Assembly (NCBI GenBank): GCA_965202585.1
Contig: OZ241834.1
Span: 12,462,001 to 12,526,000 of the forward strand
DNA from: Thalia democratica
Taxonomy: Eukaryota
Direction of reading: 5' to 3'
DNA: 64,000 bases
Part shown: positions 1,348 through 63,505 of the stretch, piece after piece
Numbering within the stretch: the stretch's first letter is position 1
Layout of the letters: every line of letters starts with the position of its first letter
Program-made: the position numbers and the translations under genes
Notes under the pieces: model-generated
What the model was told of the DNA's origin: nothing
Database searches by the model: none
What the model saw: the letters and a program-made list of their open reading frames with translations, nothing else

Positions 1348-2530
1348 AAAATATTAGTCGTTGAAAAAGGACTTTTAGTTTAAAAATGTATGTTAAAAAC
1401 TACTTTGTATAAATAATACTTTTTTAGTCATTTAACTTTGTACAGTTTATAAAAATTTTATAAAACATTGAAAAAGTTCAATTTATACTTTTACGCGGCT
1501 TAATAATCCATCATTATATTGATATCAGTACTTACACAATATTTTTCCAGATTTACTCATGATTTTGAACAACATTTAAAACAGCAGAGTGTAATACTTT
1601 AATTGAAATTGGTATATATTTTTTGTCAAGTTAAATTCAAATACTTATTTCTAATTTGTAATATTCGACAAAACTTTACTTTATCAGATACTTAAATCAA
1701 CTCAGTTAAATATTTTATTATTTCAAAACTGTTTTTTATTAGAACAATTTTGATACTACTTAGCTTTTATGATTATGTTTTTTTAACCCCTTAAAATAGT
1801 TTGTGAAAAATAATCTTTGTAAACTTTTAATATAACTCAATTTAAAAATAGATTTTAAACAAAAAATAAAAGTTAATGTTTTCCTAAACTTTTTTATGTT
1901 GATGTGCAGTTATGTTAAACTATAAAGTTCACCTTAAAGTTGCAAGACTATGCTTATTCAGAAATTACTTAATGATTAAAGTTTTAGTTTATTAATTATT
2001 TTACTTTTTAACAGCTAAGTTTATATCATACAAACCGGTAATTAATTTTTATATAAAACTCGAACATTTATTTCCAAAAAACCTATTCTTTTTTCTATTG
2101 TCGGAAGAAATTTTGTTCTATTTAAACACATTATTAAACACATGTATTTTAAATTAATAAATAGAGTCGCAACATATGAAGGTATAGTGCAAAACAAACT
2201 TAGAAAATTTGAAAAACTCTGTCTAAAAGCTACAAAACTTAAATTGGAACATTTCGTTTGACTTTTGAAAAAGAATCAGAGATATAATTCGAAAAGCTTT
2301 AAGTTTTACAAATTTTTGAAAATTAAAAATATATTTTGTTAAGTTGCAATTGGTATTTAATTTTTTTTTTGTTTTGGAAATTTATTAGATGATGAATAAT
2401 ATTTGTATGTTATTTTGTAAACTCTATTTTAAACCTTGATTTTATATATGTTTTATTGTATTCAATTAAGAGCTAGATTACTAAAACAAACCTGATTACT
2501 TTATATCTACACACAGGCTGCAAATTACAG

Positions 2531-2896
2531 ATGAGAAGCAAAACTTTCAAGGAACGTTTCACTTATCAGGACCGACAGAAAAAGTTCAGCAAGTTCAAAG
2601 AAATTTACCCGAAACGCGTTCCGGTTGTCCTGCAGCCGGAACAAAAGCACAACAACAGCAGCAGTTTGAAGCCGATGAAGAAAAATTTCTACTTATTTGG
2701 TGAAGACGTGTCATTTTGCAAAGTGCTGCAGTTCATAAGGAGCGAAATAAAAATCGGCAACGAAACAGCAGTGTGGCTGTTTGTCAACGGAATAATGCCG
2801 CAGATGACTTCAACGCTGAACAGTTTGTACGAAAATAACAAAGACAGCGACGGTTTCCTCTACATTGTGTACTGCGGTGAATTAACTTTTGGCTAA
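2531..2896 (+). CDS. Divergent ATG8/LC3/GABARAP-family ubiquitin-like protein (121 aa), single coding exon
   Basis: Intact ORF with ATG8 hallmarks YPxRVPVV, WLFVN, DSDGFLYIVY and terminal TFG-stop. Splice-acceptor-like cacag and tacag lie just upstream of the ATG, suggesting a 5'UTR intron. GC is higher than in the flanks. Confidence 0.9.
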   Translation: MRSKTFKERFTYQDRQKKFSKFKEIYPKRVPVVLQPEQKHNNSSSLKPMKKNFYLFGEDVSFCKVLQFIRSEIKIGNETAVWLFVNGIMPQMTSTLNSLYENNKDSDGFLYIVYCGELTFG

Positions 2897-3362
2897 AATC
2901 AACTGTGATTCTCCAATGAAAAAAGTTGTAGTTTTAAAAATAAAAAGTGATGTTGTTACAAAACTTTGGGAACATTTTTAAATTAATACTTACTATTCTA
3001 TTCAATAAGATATTTACTATAACTGAGGATCTCATTTATTTAGTGAAACATTTTGGCCGACTTTAAAAATATTACTTCTTAATTTATTAGACATCATAAA
3101 TTTTTAGATTACATATATTGATCAAAGTTTTAGTAAAAGAGAGTTAATATAGTGAAGTATTCAGTTTTGTAAATATATTGTAATTAAATTGTTAAAAATA
3201 ACTGAAAATTAGGTTTAAGAATTATCAACATGTCTGTAACTTTAATCGAATCTGATATGCATGAAGTTGAAACGCATACTCTAATCCAACTTGTTAATAT
3301 TCGAAACAGTATTATTTTTTATTGGAAAGCTGAACTTTTGTTCATCAGATCATAGCTTATAC

Positions 3363-55100: not shown

Positions 55101-58100
55101 GTTGTTTTACTGAAAGTTTATAACTTGTACTTTTGAAATAACTTTTTTTTAAACTATGTGTTTTATACAATACTGTTTACAAACTACTATTAGAGATACT
55201 AATAAAAAGTACTTCAAATAGGTAATTAAATTATTAATGAGTAAAACAAGTAGACAAAATAGTGATAAAAGATAATTAGACTGTATTTTAGAAAAATGTT
55301 TAATATATGCTAAAAACCCGTGGCTAAAAAAAGAAGCAAAGCTATTACTTCTAAAGGTAAAGGTAACAACCCTAACCAGGCTGGGTCTGTTACAAATGGT
55401 GACCCGGATTTTAAAAGGGCCATGGGATCTCCTGATACTACGGATGTAGGAAGACCAAACTCTTTAAATTTAAGAAATGGCAGTAGTGTCATGATGGCGG
55501 AAACTTAACTTTTACATCAAGAAATCCAACAACAACTTTAGAGGATGAAGTAAAAGAGTTAAGGTTGGTGAATGAAGAACTGGAAAGAAAAAAGGCAGCT
55601 AGAGCATTAGAAGATGAATTACAACAGCTGCGGCGCAGAAACCAAGAGCTAACCAAGCAAATGTTTCAAGTTGATCAGAGTGAAGAAATAGGTGAAAGAA
55701 TAAGAACAAGTCATGAACAGTACAGTGTTGGAATTGGAAAAATTCTTTCCACAAGTGTAAGAGAACCCTTGCATTACAGTAAATCACCAAATTATTCAGC
55801 TAGAGATACTAGCATAAGTAATTTTGCTAGAGATAGTAGACAAAATCTACCTACAACTATAAGAGAACCGTTACACTTCAGGGAAAGACCAAACTACAAA
55901 GAGGTATATGAGAGTGTGTGAAGCATGAACCATGACTTAACTAGACTAGGAGATCACAGACTCAAGTGGCTGAAGGTCTTTAAATTTGACAGTGAAGATG
56001 CGAAGGCTCTGTTCTCGTACTTCGAGGAGAGAATGGTCAATCATGGCATTACTGATAACGCAGAGAAATACTGGGTGCTTCGCGAATTTTGGCCTAATAA
56101 TGACACGTCAGCCTATTTATGATGCACAGAACCTAATAATAGGAACTTTAGTAGTTTACGTAGATATCTCATGGAAAAAGATGGAGTACTAACAAGGGTC
56201 TTACTGCCAAAAAAAACTACATCACTCTATCAGTGGATGTGACCTAACCAACGAAGTCAGCAAGTGGTTGATGGAATTAGAAGATAATGAAATTTTACAC
56301 AAGCACACTTTCACTTGGGTTTGTTGATTTTGAAAGATATGTAATGGACATGTTTGATGCTGATTTAAAAAAAATTGGGAAGCAGCAAGGTTAGTTATTT
56401 ATTCTAACAAACCTCAACAAAAACAGCAATTTACGTTTCAAAAGAGAAATGAACCACAAACTAGACAGGTCAACTATGGGTACGGACGTCCAAAAAACTC
56501 GTTTGACAGCGCTCACTATCAAAACTACAGTAACAGACATAGAAATTAGGTGAATGATGAGCCTTGTTATAGACACCGAACTCAGGGCTACAATGCTACT
56601 CGATGCGATAGCCCTAACCTATGCCCAATGAGGGAAATGTATTGCGCCATTAACATAAAAAACAGCTACCCGTCCTCCTCACAGTGAGAGGATCAGAGGA
56701 TGGGGGTAAATGTCTTCTCTCAAAGACTGCTATGACTAGCAGAACCAACAAACTAAATTCAGTTGGTAGGTATTTCAAGAAAAAAAAACAAAATCAGCAG
56801 TTCTTTTACTAAAAAGAAGTAAACTGCCAGACTAAAAAGTTTTTTATGGACAAGGTTATTCTAAAAACTCATTTGACAGATTTTTTAACAAACAAAATCA
56901 GCGGTTTTCATATCAAGTAAGAAATAAAATGCCAGTTCAACAGGTCAATTACGAGCAAAGACATAATAGAAACTTCTTTGGCAAAAAATTTAAGTATCAA
57001 AACCAACTATTCTCATACCAAAGAAATGGTGAACTGCCAGTTCAACAGGTCAATTATGGGCAAGGACAGCCTAAGTCTAAACAAAACTATCATAAAGTCG
57101 AAAAGTTCTCAAGAAAATACAACCAACAAAGAAGTGATGTTTTGCAACAGCAGCAAAAAAGCAAGTCAAATTTTACTAAGACCTACCATTGTTAAAATCA
57201 GTTGTCAAATCAGCAAAAACAAAGTTTAACGAAAGCAACAGCACCAATAAGCATAACAAAAAAGAAGAGTACAACTCACAATATGCCTACTACTGATGAA
57301 AAAGTTATCAGACCCCGCAAGATATCACCCACTAATTTGAATTTTGGTTCAAAAAAGCTTTACTTCATTAAAAACACCTCCCAAACTTCATGTATTAATT
57401 TAAATTCCCCACATAGTAGATTGCCACCCCCTGGTTTTAATTCTAAAACTGTGAATCTTTCTCCTCAAGCTGTGCATTTTCAAAGCAACTTAATCAAATC
57501 AGCAAAATGAGCAGTTCTGGCCTGACATGAAGTTTCCAAACATATAAAAAATTGCTAACAAAAGAAGTAACCAAGTTAGCCAAATGACATCCAATATCTT
57601 CAACTCCATGTTTCAGTTGGTAAGCCTTCTGTCAACAGTCAATCTACAGTTATAAACACAATATCTTGGATTTTTTTGCTCAAAATATATTTCATGTAGC
57701 TGGAAATAATAAAATAAAATTTAGGAAATACTCATTAGTATTTGTTTGGTGAATGAGAAAATGTTTAGCGTAGGACTCGTTGCAAGGAAAGTTTTATCAT
57801 TTGTGTGTACAAAGTGCTCAAGCAAGTACACCCCGACACTGGAATATCCAGCAAGGCCATGACCATTTTTGTCTCTTTCATTACCGCTGAAGCTTCAAGT
57901 TTGGCTCAGTGCAACAATTAATTCATGATCATGTCTGGTTGTAGTAAAAAAGGAAAAGGTTTGAGAAAAGGAGGCGCCAAACGCCATGTAATGTTTTTCG
58001 TGATAACATCTAGGGTATCACCAAGCCCGCCATTTGCCGATTGGCTCGTCGAGGCGGTGTCAAGCGTATTTCAGACTTGATTTACGAAGAAACTCGTAGT

Positions 58101-60943
58101 AGTGTGCTGAAAGTATTTTTTGAAAACGTTGTTCGTGATGCAGTCACTTATACTGAGCATGCCAAGTGTAAGATAGTCACCGCTTTGGATGTTGTATGCG
58201 CATTGAAGCGTGGAGGACGTACATTGTACGGATTCGGAGACCGAGATTGTCCTGGGAGAGATAGCCAGTGGAAGTGGATAGCAGCTAATGCTTAAAAAAG
58301 AAAAGGAACACTTCAAAGGAATGATTATTTATGTTTGTTGTGATAACGTTTTGTACTTGTTTATGTAAAAATTGTTCAGTATAAAATATTTAATTTTTAA
58401 ACTTTAAGTTTATCTTTTGGTAAAAAAATTAAAAAAAACCCTCTAATGGTCTTCAGTTAGAGGATTTGAGGAGGGAAAATGTAACAAATTGTCTTTTGAT
58501 ATTTTTGATTTTAATTTTTACCACACTAACTTATAATTTTGCGCTAAAGAGTATTTATATTTGATTATTGATTTGTGTTATCAGTTGTTTAAAAATTTAG
58601 TTAGTGTATGTGTGTATTGCTTTTTTTTAATAAAACACTTTATCACAGTTATTGTTAGAATTTGATATATATTTTTGGCAGTAAATAGCTATTAATATTT
58701 TGTAATAAAAGTTGTAAATGAGTGATTCAGATAGTACATTCAGAGCTAAACGCTCAAAATGTGTGGCTAAAAATAGAAGCAAAGCTATTACTTCTAAGGT
58801 AAATGTAACAACCCTAACCAGGCTGGGTATGTTACAAATACACGTTAACGTTTTTTTTTAATCAATGTATTTAAATGACCCGAAAACAAAACTAAACCAT
58901 AAAAAATGCAAGTAGTCACAATACTTGATTATTTAGTAAAAATAAAACTTTTTTTTTTCAACATTGTTAGTTAAAAAGAATTAATTACCTGTAAATAACA
59001 ATAGAGTAGAGTTAGTTTTGCTACTACTTTTTTGTTTCCGTTTTTTGGCAGTAGCTGTTTTTATAAAGTAAAACTGAATTTATTAATAGATATGTTTTGG
59101 AATACTTTGTATATGTATATTGTATACACATACACTGTACAGTGTACTTAGCTTAATTTAGCAAAAATAATTTCTACTTCTTATCATAAAATGTTCGTTT
59201 ATATTTTTAAGATGAACTTAACAAACTTGTTTGAAGAATCTGATTTGTTTTCAATGTTGTTTTTCTTTTATCTACAAAAAATTTACAAAAACTTGTATGT
59301 ATTTAAATTGCATATACACAAATAGGGTAGGTGTTAAATTTGCACGTGTGCACAAAATTACACAAAAATAAAATTGCACGAAAAAATTTTTACACGAAGA
59401 TACTTTTGCACGGAGGGTCAATTTTGCACAAAAACATTTTTGCATTGACATCGGGTTAAAATTTTGTTTAATTTTTTTTTAATCATAAAAATTTTTTTTT
59501 TACTTTCACTGTTACCACTAACCCTTGACCTCGGTCGGTAACTTATTTTTTCTTTATATTTTTTATTAGTTATTTTATTTATTGGTTATTTTATTTTATT
59601 GTCTTTATATTTTTAAATATTAGTTATCATTTGTTTTTTTGTTTTATTTTTACTATCACTATTACCCCTAACCCTTACCCTCAGTCGGTAGTTTTTTTTA
59701 AAAAATTTTTTTGTTTTTGTTTTTCTAGTCTTTTTTTAACAGTAAGTTTTATTAGTTTTATTTTTATTATCACTGTTACTGCTATCCCTTACCCTCGGTC
59801 AGTAACTTTTTTCTTCTCCTCGTTTTTTTTTATTAACTAATATTTTAGTTTTTATCATTTTTTTAGAACTTCTTTTTTCTCTTGTTTAATTACTCTTGTG
59901 CAAAAATGACCATCCGTGCAAAACTGTCACTCGTGCAAATTGTCTTTGTGCAATTTTGTCTCCTCGTGCAAATTTGTCTTTGTGCAATTTAGTCCCCTCG
60001 TGCAATTTTGACCCGTTCCCACACTAATACTATGTGTAGCTTCATTTAGCAAAAATTAAATACTTCTTTTTTATCGTAAAATTTTAGTTTTTGTTCTTAA
60101 GATGATTTAAACAAACTTGTTTGCAGAATTTGATTTGATTTCGTTGTCGTTTCTCTTTTTTCTAAAAATAAAAATTGACAAGAACTTTTATAGGTTTACA
60201 CATTCTTTATAAATAGCTTCATTTAGCGAAAATTTTATAGTAATACTTTTTATATTGAAATATTTGTTTATATTTTGAGATGAAACAAACTTGTTTGAAG
60301 AATCTGATTTGATTTCGTTGTTGCTTCTTTTTTTTCTAAAAAGTTGTTTTACTACAAGGAATTTAAAAGTCTTTATATATGACAAAAAAAAACTGTTTAA
60401 TAATTTACGATACTTTCAATTCAAATGATAAGTTGTTTTCAAAATGCTATAAAAAATTTAAGTTAATGGTTTTGTAACATATTAAAACTAGTAGTTTAAT
60501 ACTTACATATATGCATAATTATTAAAATATTTTTTAAAAACTATTTTTTTTACATAGTGTTTATAAAATGTATGATTTACTCAATAAAATACCGTGAAGT
60601 TGTTACATGAAACAAACCATTTTTATAAAAAATATAAATAAAAACAACTTATTTACCGATGCAGTCGTTTTGAAAAGTATTTCGATGTATAAGGCAACCA
60701 TTTAATTCATTCTGTGAACAAATTCTTAATTTTTTTTATTATCTAGATATTACTATAAGTAAATAAAGTATAGATTATTTGGAATACTAAATACTACAAA
60801 AGTTTAAAAACTAAAGCAGATTGTAATCAGAGTATCTACTTTGTAAAATTTTGTTTTCTTAAAACTTATACTGAGTTGTTAAAGAAAACGTTCAATACCA
60901 CATTAGCAAAAAATAAACGCTTTAGAATATTCTTAAAATTCAT
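52182..60943 (-). CDS. Putative micro-exon gene for a small type I membrane protein (3' end not found)
   Basis: AG/GT-bounded, phase-compatible exons: 60872-60943, 60657-60711, 60291-60335, 60117-60161, 59227-59271, 59000(or 58989)-59054, 58880-58923, 54990-55020, 52182-52256. Product: [155 protein letters not shown]. One junction needs a weak donor. Confidence 0.5.
53653..53772 (+). repeat. Dispersed SINE-like core, copy 4
   Basis: gtcttggacaagacgttaaa...aaccgaaaggttttttcgtgcaccaggtcc...tgtcgtttaac. Confidence 0.75.
55490..56690 (+). pseudogene. Decayed gag (coiled coil, DUF7041-like segment, C-x2-H...C knuckle)
   Basis: [34 protein letters not shown] resembles the invertebrate Gypsy gag motif PFxxxDPxLWFxxxExxFxxxGITxxxxKY; later [20 protein letters not shown] resembles CYYHxxFGxxAxxCxxPC. 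Several stops and frameshifts. Confidence 0.7.
57769..57930 (+). pseudogene. H2B: Histone H2B fragment
   Basis: [53 protein letters not shown] aligns to H2[27 protein letters not shown]...EASRLAHYNKRSTI, with an in-frame ~7-residue deletion; alpha3 and alphaC absent. Confidence 0.92.
57931..58241 (+). pseudogene. H4: Histone H4 pseudogene, full length
   Basis: [19 protein letters not shown] [1-nt deletion] [53 protein letters not shown]27 stop; R3C, R35C, R78C; no histone stem-loop downstream. Confidence 0.96.
58480..58836 (+). repeat. 3' LTR (357 bp)
   Basis: TG...CA termini with TGTAAC/GTTACA inverted ends, preceded by a purine tract; terminal 74 nt duplicated at 55320-55394. Confidence 0.85.
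59325..60020. mobile_element. Mutator-like MITE with TTGCACGA subterminal repeats and 9-bp TSD
   Basis: gggtaggtgttaaattgcacg / cgtgcaattttgacccgttccc; flanks acacaaata (59316-59324) and acactaata (60021-60029); three internal taacccttaccctcggtcggta-like repeats. Confidence 0.85.
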
Positions 60944-61679: not shown

Positions 61680-63338
61680 CAAAAGTGTAAGCTAACCCCG
61701 GTTAAACTAAAATCACAGTCACACTTCGTAAGATCCGTTTTTCTATCAAACCATTTAAGAAGTTTTCTGCAGTCTTCTTTATCCTTTTCTTTAATTGAAC
61801 AAAATTTACTCGAAGTCTGCAATTTATTTAATAGCGCTAAATAGTTTAAATTTTATCTTTAAGATTATAAATTAATAAAATCTCAAATAATAATAATTTG
61901 TATAAAAAATAAACTATAATAACTTAAATTTTTAGAACAATATTTCAATGCATTGTAAAAAATCAATTTTAATATCATTAGTAATTGTTTTTTAGGTACG
62001 CTTAATAGAAAAAAATTTGAGTTAAGTTATAAGTTGTTTTTAAAACATCGGATTTTAAATAACTTTCTGAGTTCTCTCAAATGTCTTTTGAGTTGTTATA
62101 AAAAAAAGTTATTTATTTAAGAAGTCTTGAGAAACGCTTTTAAAAATAGAAATTTCTAAAGTCTTGTTTAATCGTAAACAGAAACTATTATTTTTATCAT
62201 TCTACTTTAACCATGACATATTAAATTTGTTTCTTTTTAGTTGTTTGAAGCACTTTTTCTTAACTAAAAACCAAGGCTAATAAAAGTTATTTAGTTTGTT
62301 TGTAGCTAAACTTGGTTACACTTTGTACACAAAAAAACTAAAAAAAAAAAAGACAATATTTAATAACTTTATTATATATGGTCTCCCTAAATCTAATATT
62401 TTTGTTAGAAAGTAGTAAAAGCGATACTCAAAATTATTTTATGCTCAATAAAGTAAATTTCTCATAATGTTATATAAAAAAGATTATTGGTATAACACTA
62501 ATCAAAAATATTTTTTGAATCCTATAACAAAATAGATCTTTATATTTTAATCTATAAAAATGATTGAAATGAAAAAAAAAACGGCTGTTTAACACAAACG
62601 GTCAATGAAGTAATTATTGCTATAGAGTTTGTAAGTAAAAGAACTTGATTGTTCTTTAAAAATGTTTAATTTTTGTTTATATTTAAATGCATTTTTTAAT
62701 AAAAAAGCAACAAACATATTTTTCAAAACTTGTTCTATAGAGGTAACATAAACTTTAAACTTTTGTTTTCTGTTTTAAAAATTAGACAAACTTTTTTTAA
62801 TGAATACTATACGGTAGTTGTTCTAATCGACAGACGCAAAAGTATATTAAAAGAAATGAGCTCAAATGTATGACCAAGAAGTCTAGTGTATAAAAACAAC
62901 TTGATCTTTAGCCAAACATGTTTTTTTTTTCTAAAACTATTACGCAAAATTTCACTAGAACTGTTTTGTAATAGTAAAAATTTATTAAATTTCAAAAGAA
63001 GAAAGACATATACATAAAACTAATAAAACAAAATACAACACTCACTAAGTAACAACTTTACATGGTTATTTATATAATTAAATGGTAGAATCTGCATCAA
63101 AATATAAGCTTTAGCAAATTTATACAAAATTAATTTATTGCAAGCGCTTTTTATAAACTTCTTACAAGTTAATACGCCTGAGTTTATAATTGTAAGCAAA
63201 TTTTTTTTCTACCATTTATATAATATTTTTGTATTATAATATTTTGAGTTACGTGTAATACATTCTTTAGTACTCTACACTTTGTTTTGTAAAATTTCTT
63301 TGTTTTTTATTAACAATATTTTTTACACAGTCTAAAAT

Positions 63339-63505
63339 GGGAACGGGTCAAATATGAACGAAGACACTATTGCACAAAGGGGCATTTTTGCAAGAAGACA
63401 CTTTTGCATGAAGGGTTACTTTGCACAAGGGGTCACTTTTGCACGAAGACACTTTTGCATAAAGGGTCAATTTTGAACGAAGAGTCATTTTTTCACGAGA
63501 GTTAA
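63339..63505 (+). mobile_element. Left end of a second TTGCACGA-family element
   Basis: gggaacgggtcaaa terminus followed by ~19-bp ttttgcacgaagggtcac repeats; no right end in the window. Confidence 0.75.

Follow-up and report, generated by a model that had tools for sequence, protein, structure and literature searches.

The window analysed here, a 64,000-nt stretch of the Thalia democratica genome (C10:12462001-12526000 of the 802-Mb assembly), contains a decayed long terminal repeat (LTR) retrotransposon that lacks pol and carries sequence of the core histones H2B and H4 in its interior (Table 1). The most probable explanation, to which we assign a probability of about 0.8, is that this element belongs to an old Ty3/Gypsy-type family that took up host histone mRNAs by template switching and carried them as untranslated passengers, the window copy being a dead, pol-less derivative. 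A sequence-only reading of the same DNA had described an LTR end, a primer binding site (PBS), a decayed gag, no pol, H2B and H4 sequence, a polypurine tract (PPT) and a 357-bp 3' LTR, and every one of these features is present, the gag by position only. It had also proposed a non-autonomous family that captured histone mRNAs. The capture does belong to the family as a whole and is mRNA-derived, but it took place in pol-bearing elements.

The histone block recurs with the same boundaries throughout the family

We compared copies one by one against host genes, covering loci L001-L080 and coordinate tables. In a genome search with window positions 57700-58479, host H4 genes matched the H4 part only, at 88-90%, and dispersed loci matched the histones and the element flanks together, at 78-85%. 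Segment mapping and tblastn across 80 loci revealed H2B and/or H4 in 17 copies beside that of the window, and the junctions of the H2B-H4 block agree in at least 16 copies. A query composed of the last 27 nt of H4 and the adjoining 3' untranslated segment of the element (hereafter 'post') found 29 loci, about 20 of which bridge the H4/post junction. Whether H2B and H4 recur at the same position, a question raised from the window alone, thus has a positive answer.

In all copies, the H4 boundaries are identical, from -15 to nucleotide 307 of the coding sequence (CDS), and in most of them the H4 frame continues for 10 codons past the junction to a TAG. The match of H2B to the host starts at about -1 to ~-15 and ends at ~nt 348, and a spacer of 85-110 nt lies between H2B and H4. 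One subfamily retains only an internal part of H4 (nt 36-288). Because the block has the same boundaries in all copies, we conclude that it had a single origin and was then spread by transposition. The chimera was thus retroposed again: its junctions are shared by ~20 dispersed loci, and complete copies have their own, separate target-site duplications (TSDs).

That a long interspersed nuclear element (LINE) later placed a processed histone pseudogene into one dead copy is scarcely credible. The general frequency of such events is the only point in its favour, and it is opposed by the recurrence of one position and one set of junctions at these dispersed loci, elements with their own TSDs among them. 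The block also has neither a poly-A nor a TSD at its edges, the two marks that the sequence-only reading had associated with a later insertion.

Host mRNAs as the probable source of the captured sequences

In the host clusters, H4 precedes H2B on the same strand with a 411-bp spacer between the two, and each gene is followed by a GGCTCTT(T/A)(T/A)AAGAGCC stem-loop. The element has the reversed order, with H2B, then its spacer, then H4, and it has no stem-loop and no promoter. Similarity to the host is confined to transcribed parts. It begins 13-26 nt before the ATGs (H4 at -15; H2A, described below, at -13/-26), near a TCATTC initiator-like motif ~30 nt past the TATA box, which would correspond to the transcription start. 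As the sequence-only reading had stated, neither a host stem-loop nor a host spacer was found within the window copy. The spacer of the element shows no similarity above shuffled controls to the host H2B/H4 flanks. No closer host H2B paralogue was found as a source, the best non-element matches being the canonical clusters at 76-77%.

The replication-type histone arrays of this genome are large and dispersed (C10:27.98-28.62 Mb, C2:52.6-55.7 Mb, C9:3.15-3.20 and 8.12-8.14 Mb; L041-L060), with H2A and H3 near the H4/H2B pair and 17 distinct H4 coding alleles for one protein. At C1:31042212-31043401, three H2B-like fragments (query 86-317, 76-77%) with a regular 468-bp spacing could represent a short tandem array derived from part of an H2B pseudogene.

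Further insight into the mode of capture came from a sister subfamily of at least eight copies, consisting of L018, L074, L080 and five further loci, with L038 as an intermediate (loci at L018:1997-2921, equal to C7:41921100-41922024, and at C8:28419956, C8:27977770, C68:40239 and C8:29179931). Here, the cargo lies between the gag/protease linker and 'post', and consists of a fragment of an RRM gene, H4 nt 36-288 and H2A. The RRM fragment (RRM_1, 20.3 bits) comprises three exons that adjoin in the element, whereas 5.7 kb and 0.1 kb separate them in the parent gene at C8:36512818-36518920. Because these exons are joined in the element, capture occurred at the RNA level, by template switching. 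The H2A part extends from -13/-26 to nt 298 and is 86% identical to the host gene. The H4/H2A junction falls in an overlap of ~20 nt (H4 nt 268-288) where the H4 CDS resembles the H2A leader and start, and the H2A/post junction (H2A nt ~290) has GGAGGAG-like sequence on both sides. Weaker microsimilarity, which is suggestive, exists between H2B nt 233 and the H4 leader (AACAA vs AATAA) and between H2B and the 68-nt stretch preceding it ('preH'). With this cargo, the sister subfamily records host-mRNA capture for a second time.

We also considered acquisition at the DNA level, by recombination with, or read-through into, a genomic histone cluster. Histone genes are intronless, so the intron-loss test is inapplicable to them, and the block has no poly-A, though histone mRNAs have none anyway. 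Similarity, however, ends 13-15 nt upstream of the ATGs and before the H4 stop, with no promoter, stem-loop or spacer; gene order and spacing are unlike those of the host cluster; and the same family took up a spliced mRNA. We therefore judge an origin from genomic DNA to be highly unlikely.

Pol-bearing relatives carry the same block

In L063, FVVDTNSNVVFLVDTGSE (with a DTG protease motif) and YFDDILVYS are found downstream of the same gag-like sequence as in the window copy. The reverse transcriptase (RT) piece of this locus scores 37.3 bits against RVT_1 (cut-off 29.6), and its N-terminus has Ty3 RT as its sole PDB matches (E 5e-4). Two loci, L039 and L012, have the integrase core and C-terminal pieces at the 3' end of pol, with H2B following directly; here H2B begins at its own ATG with a leader of ~15 nt, and in L012 pol ends ~130 nt before this ATG. 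The LTRs of L007 and L012 are 93.9% identical to each other, compared with at most 90.4% to the other compared LTRs, and AACA stands on both outer sides. From this identity and the AACA TSD we conclude that C5:52165716-52178383 is a single integration event, which holds gag, protease, the RT start (L067), integrase, H2B, H4 and PPT as well as nested insertions. The integrase tail is joined to H2B and the spacer at two further loci (C5:5076 and C1:6675). In the relatives, the evidence for pol covers protease, RT start and integrase.

Since the block occurs in pol-bearing copies too, and with unchanged junctions, its capture predates the loss of pol. Other members of the family, including pol-bearing ones, thus contain the histones, as opposed to a family with pol and without histones, which the sequence-only reading had named as the outcome contrary to its proposal. 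One pol-bearing locus, C8:4325, has an unrelated repeat at the position of the histone block, and the same repeat is nested in L023; this looks like a secondary loss of the block. An unrelated repeat of ~0.8-1.1 kb is shared by L023:418-1268 and L004:~1990-3160, lying inside gag in one copy and replacing the histone block in the other, and probably represents a small mobile element in its own right.

The window copy is a later, internally deleted derivative with a mosaic composition produced by deletion and recombination. Its segment B (56755-57700) is found at 74-78% in another, histone-free element type (L075, L077, L078, C4:75138001, C4:75241262 and C4:75255045). L075 and L078 share both B and preH with the window type and part from it exactly at the H2B start, and the B/H2B junction falls within a stretch of ~10 nt that resembles both parents. 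A deletion from H2B nt 234 to H4 -15, at AACAA/AATAA, is common to the window copy, L062, L068 and L012. Its occurrence in pol-less and pol-bearing copies alike implies recombination between family members.

The histone sequences decayed without detectable constraint

Each copy, as it stands, was projected onto the host CDS. Across the 12 main-group copies, the H4 lesions are private to single copies. The H2B lesions of the long copies are shared: a 21-nt deletion occurs in all of them, a TAG at codon 98 in seven of seven, and 1-nt deletions at nt 288 and nt 256 in six and five of the seven, respectively. L012 and L039, the sole copies with the H2B N-terminus, both have a 4-nt deletion at nt 64. 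Since these lesions are shared, the common ancestor from which the sampled long copies descend already had a disabled H2B. Near-fixed, element-specific substitutions affect 15 of 264 sites in H2B and 2 of 307 in H4, and because of this larger number H2B was either captured earlier or decayed longer before the radiation of the family.

To score substitutions, we compared the copies with 17 host H4 and 6 host H2B alleles and called changes private when they occurred in one copy and shared when they occurred in two or more; shared changes were taken as mostly made while the lineage still transposed. The neutral expectation was derived from the observed mutation spectrum, CpG transitions included, and compared by a binomial test. 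Shared H4 changes comprise 58 non-synonymous and 16 synonymous substitutions (omega-like ratio 0.82, p=0.46), and shared H2B changes 43 and 19 (0.72, p=0.24). Comparison of shared with private changes gave Fisher p=0.08-0.12. Hence, no constraint on H4 or H2B is detectable in the shared changes. G57S is near-fixed in H4, and L23F, R36C, R41Q and T81I, all at conserved residues, are widely shared. An uninterrupted H4-like frame exists in L012 only, where it spans 105 amino acids and has a 7-residue deletion. A neutral ratio in so constrained a protein rules out canonical H4 function during the spread of the family.

A reading of the two fragments as an in-frame chimera resembling a histone doublet was tried and rejected. 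They do share a common frame, but TAA or TGA stands between them in three of four copies. The reading also fails on the H2B part being a pseudogene and on the junction being an internal deletion.

The sequence-only reading had left open whether the histones were taken up passively or as cargo affecting chromatin or packaging. Passive capture is the alternative that fits, and the second idea is not supported in view of the broken ancestral H2B, the neutral H4 and the spread of a subfamily with an H4 fragment. In a more specific form, the ancestral autonomous element might have drawn an accessory protein from the histones, or at minimum from the H4-like frame and the 10-residue extension at its C-terminus; such a protein would have chromatinised the cDNA or countered host silencing, and this use might have been lost later. 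Several features would agree with such a protein. The block lies downstream of pol, the usual place of accessory genes, and pol was not replaced; it persisted through the diversification of the family up to the L069 lineage; and H4 begins at its own ATG and closes at the TAG 10 codons beyond the junction, being still open in L012. Moreover, no disabling H4 lesion is shared by the 12 main-group copies, and non-synonymous substitutions are weakly, though non-significantly, under-represented among the deepest shared H4 changes. Nevertheless, we consider an accessory protein unlikely, given the 58 shared non-synonymous H4 changes with a ratio indistinguishable from neutral, the altered conserved residues and the near-fixed G57S. 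In addition, its partner, H2B, was no longer intact in the ancestor, the subfamily with H4 nt 36-288 still reached at least eight copies without a start codon, and H2B and H4 are not heterodimer partners in the nucleosome. It appears quite improbable that the family kept histone sequence for a reason at all, be it an expressed H4-like protein or an RNA or DNA segment acting in cis on the chromatin packaging of the cDNA or the integrated copy. If this were true, the repeated uptake of three core histones would reflect selection and not mere mRNA abundance.

A model for the origin of the block

Returning to passenger mRNAs, we propose the following history. While the family was active, its RT would have switched onto host mRNAs packaged together with the element RNA, placing a copy of the H2B mRNA, the 85-110-nt spacer and a copy of the H4 mRNA in sense between the end of pol and the PPT. 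Pol-bearing carriers of the block evidently kept transposing, and further deletion and recombination gave the later derivatives. In the window type, segment B stands in place of pol, joined near H2B codon 17-21, and the stretch from H2B nt 234 through the spacer is deleted. Non-autonomous copies such as that of the window presumably depended on pol-bearing relatives for mobilisation in trans. The window copy itself is an old insertion, its LTR ends being ~8% apart, and it later lost most of its 5' LTR.

Some observations weigh against this history or fit it less well. We recovered no histone-free ancestor that would show the element side of the original pol/H2B and H4/post junctions and any microsimilarity there. 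The spacer has no genomic match outside the element copies. A simple run to the end of the mRNA would have included the H2B 3' stem-loop, which is absent, and the transcription starts with which the captured 5' ends were compared were placed from promoter motifs. Lastly, H4, unlike H2B, has no disabling lesion common to the main group, and the deficit in its deepest shared changes (10 non-synonymous, 5 synonymous) is non-significant at p=0.17; there is a small chance that H4 was briefly constrained at an early stage.

Relation to known cases of host-gene capture

The histone-bearing family is an instance of a known process, LTR-mediated retroposition or transduction, and not a new type of system. 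LTR-mediated retroposition in animals proceeds by microsimilarity-dependent template switching and yields chimeras made of more than one gene as well as secondary retroposition (Tan et al. 2016, Genome Res, PMC5131818). Our family resembles the cases of Tan et al. in that host mRNA lies in sense between LTRs, the gene copies are partial and several parents contribute to one chimera, in the microsimilarity at the switch points (here H4/H2A and H2A/post), and in the chimeras being non-autonomous and retroposed again. It differs in that their retrocopies replaced part of the open reading frames, whereas our block lies downstream of integrase in pol-bearing copies; in its passengers, which are three of the four replication-type core histones and an RRM gene; and in being an old family of tens of copies, where theirs were young polymorphic insertions.

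The window type is also similar to Bs1, a pol-less, non-autonomous LTR element with several host-gene fragments that is mobilised in trans. The chimeric protein of Bs1 is expressed, however, whereas here the frames are broken and neutral, and the cargo is also present in pol-bearing relatives. Transducing retroviruses such as Rous sarcoma virus gained expressed and selected host-mRNA cargo 3' of the replicative genes during reverse transcription. The position of our mRNA-derived cargo, 3' of the replicative genes with none of them removed, is the same, but the carrier is an endogenous invertebrate Ty3/Gypsy element without env, and no selection on the cargo is detectable. Viral histones, such as the H2B-H2A and H4-H3 doublets of Marseilleviridae and the H4 of bracoviruses, are intact, expressed and nucleosome-forming and follow the natural heterodimer pairing. 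Shared with them is the presence of core-histone sequence inside a mobile genome, with two segments adjoining; unlike them, the element joins H2B to H4, which are not dimer partners, with stops and frameshifts and without conservation. Within the literature searched, a limited body of papers, we found no report of histone-carrying LTR elements.

The family thus provides a well-resolved invertebrate example of LTR retrotransposons shuffling host genes and documents serial template switching, its junctions being located at the 5' ends of mRNAs and in stretches of microsimilarity. It also shows that a family can carry ~0.9 kb of useless cargo for a long part of its history. For genome annotation, ~20 H4-like and ~15 H2B-like matches in this genome are element-borne pseudogenes, which are liable to be mis-called as histone genes or doublets.

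Structure of the window copy

The features of the window copy are compiled in Table 1. Host H2B and H4 from the intact genes at L041 and L043 served as tblastn queries.

Table 1 Features of the histone-bearing LTR element in the window (positions within the 64,000-nt stretch).
Feature	Position	Strand	Remarks
LTR element	55304-58836	+	5' LTR remnant, PBS, gag-like region, no pol, H2B, H4, PPT, 3' LTR; ~3.5 kb
5' LTR remnant, final ~91 nt	55304-55394	+	direct repeat with 58747-58836
PBS-like TGGTGACCCGGAT	55397-55409	+	2 nt past LTR end; TGG-initiated; read directly
Decayed gag-like region (segments A1/A2), 1.36 kb	55395-56754	+	multiple stops; homology to pol-bearing copies
Segment B and 68-nt preH stretch	56755-57766	+	Q/N-rich; internal ~105-nt repeats; occupies pol position
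H2B pseudogene fragment	57767-57917	+	host CDS nt 62-233; tblastn residues 22-77, E 6e-17; blastn to host H2B
H4 5' leader (-15 to -1)	57916-57930	+	abuts H2B nt 233
H4 pseudogene, CDS nt 1-307 of 312, without stop codon	57931-58239	+	90.5% to host H4 CDS; tblastn E 1e-39
Element's own 3' untranslated segment ('post'), 228 nt, AT-rich	58240-58467	+	
PPT GAGGAGGGAAAA	58468-58479	+	abuts 3' LTR; conserved in other copies
Complete 3' LTR, 357 bp, TGT...ACA (TG..CA ends)	58480-58836	+	

The first ~265 nt of the 5' LTR are gone, leaving the TSD unreadable there, and read depth rises steeply at ~55268-55434, over the LTR remnant. The LTR ends differ by 7 mismatches and 1 indel across 85 alignable nt, corresponding to a Kimura two-parameter (K2P) distance of 0.087; the earlier count of 4 differences in 75 nt is correct for that shorter span. 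The PBS motif is also present behind the 5' LTR in L002, L003, L007, L009, L014, L023, L025 and L027, and ARAGORN found no tRNA with a complementary 3' end in the window and loci.

The gag-like region is 74-90% identical to the interval from the PBS to protease/RT in L063, L065, L066, L067 and L069. Its putative assignment to gag is founded on this position, just upstream of protease/RT in the pol-bearing copies. No Pfam domain was found in the frames of the gag-like region and segment B. A degenerate knuckle-like motif is common to the copies, and a canonical CCHC knuckle is absent from every copy examined. Similarity to pol was found nowhere in the window copy.

The H2B fragment carries the family-wide 21-nt deletion, which removes residues VNDIFER, and a TAA at 57919-57921 stands between it and H4. 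The H4 of this copy lacks 1 nt at nt 58, reads TAG at codon 28 and has gained 3 nt at nt 167. The R-to-C changes in H4 pointed out by the sequence-only reading are real (CGT>TGT), and several of them recur at CpG sites in other copies.

Age and spread of the LTR family

Of 220 candidates in the genome, at least 41 match the 3' LTR at 79-87%, and many of these matches are solo LTRs with 4-bp TSDs (ATGC, ATAT, CATT, TCTA, ATCT and CTTT). L062 on C2 is a complete pol-less copy, collinear with that of the window over 3.5 kb at 84%, with both LTRs (K2P 0.074) and the TSD TTTT. LTR pairs within elements are separated by K2P distances of 0.074-0.10 and the nearest copies among themselves by 0.11-0.13, from which we conclude that all sampled copies are ancient. 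The junction of the window copy's 3' LTR with its flank is spanned, with 0 differences, by a contig of an independent run of the same organism and, at ~95% identity, by a marine-metagenome contig. Both contigs agree with an insertion that is old and has become fixed in a marine animal. Diversification of the family reaches 69% identity in the LTR and ~75% in gag in the L069 lineage, where the histone block is still present. About nine integrase copies are at least 75% identical to L039 at the amino acid level, with open frames of at most 569 amino acids. The closest integrase relatives lie at C8:22889306, C6:22356646 and C6:29242553.

Five pairs of LTR loci (L005/L010, L011/L017, L013/L019, L024/L026 and L025/L027) match in both flanks too, at 78-96%; segmental duplication, and not transposition, gave rise to these LTR copies. 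Other Gypsy families, at most 68% identical to the L039 integrase, have uninterrupted pol frames of 1100-1700 amino acids and many near-identical copies (e.g. C7:23150162, C5:61679194 and C1:92941440) and look recently active.

Outside the element, the window contains a minisatellite with 17/34-nt units (TTGCACGAAGACACTTTTGCA-like) at 59372-59489 and 63336-63489. Its summed contig depth is ~1e5 in two runs, compared with ~100 for the single-copy flanks, and it must therefore be very abundant in the genome.

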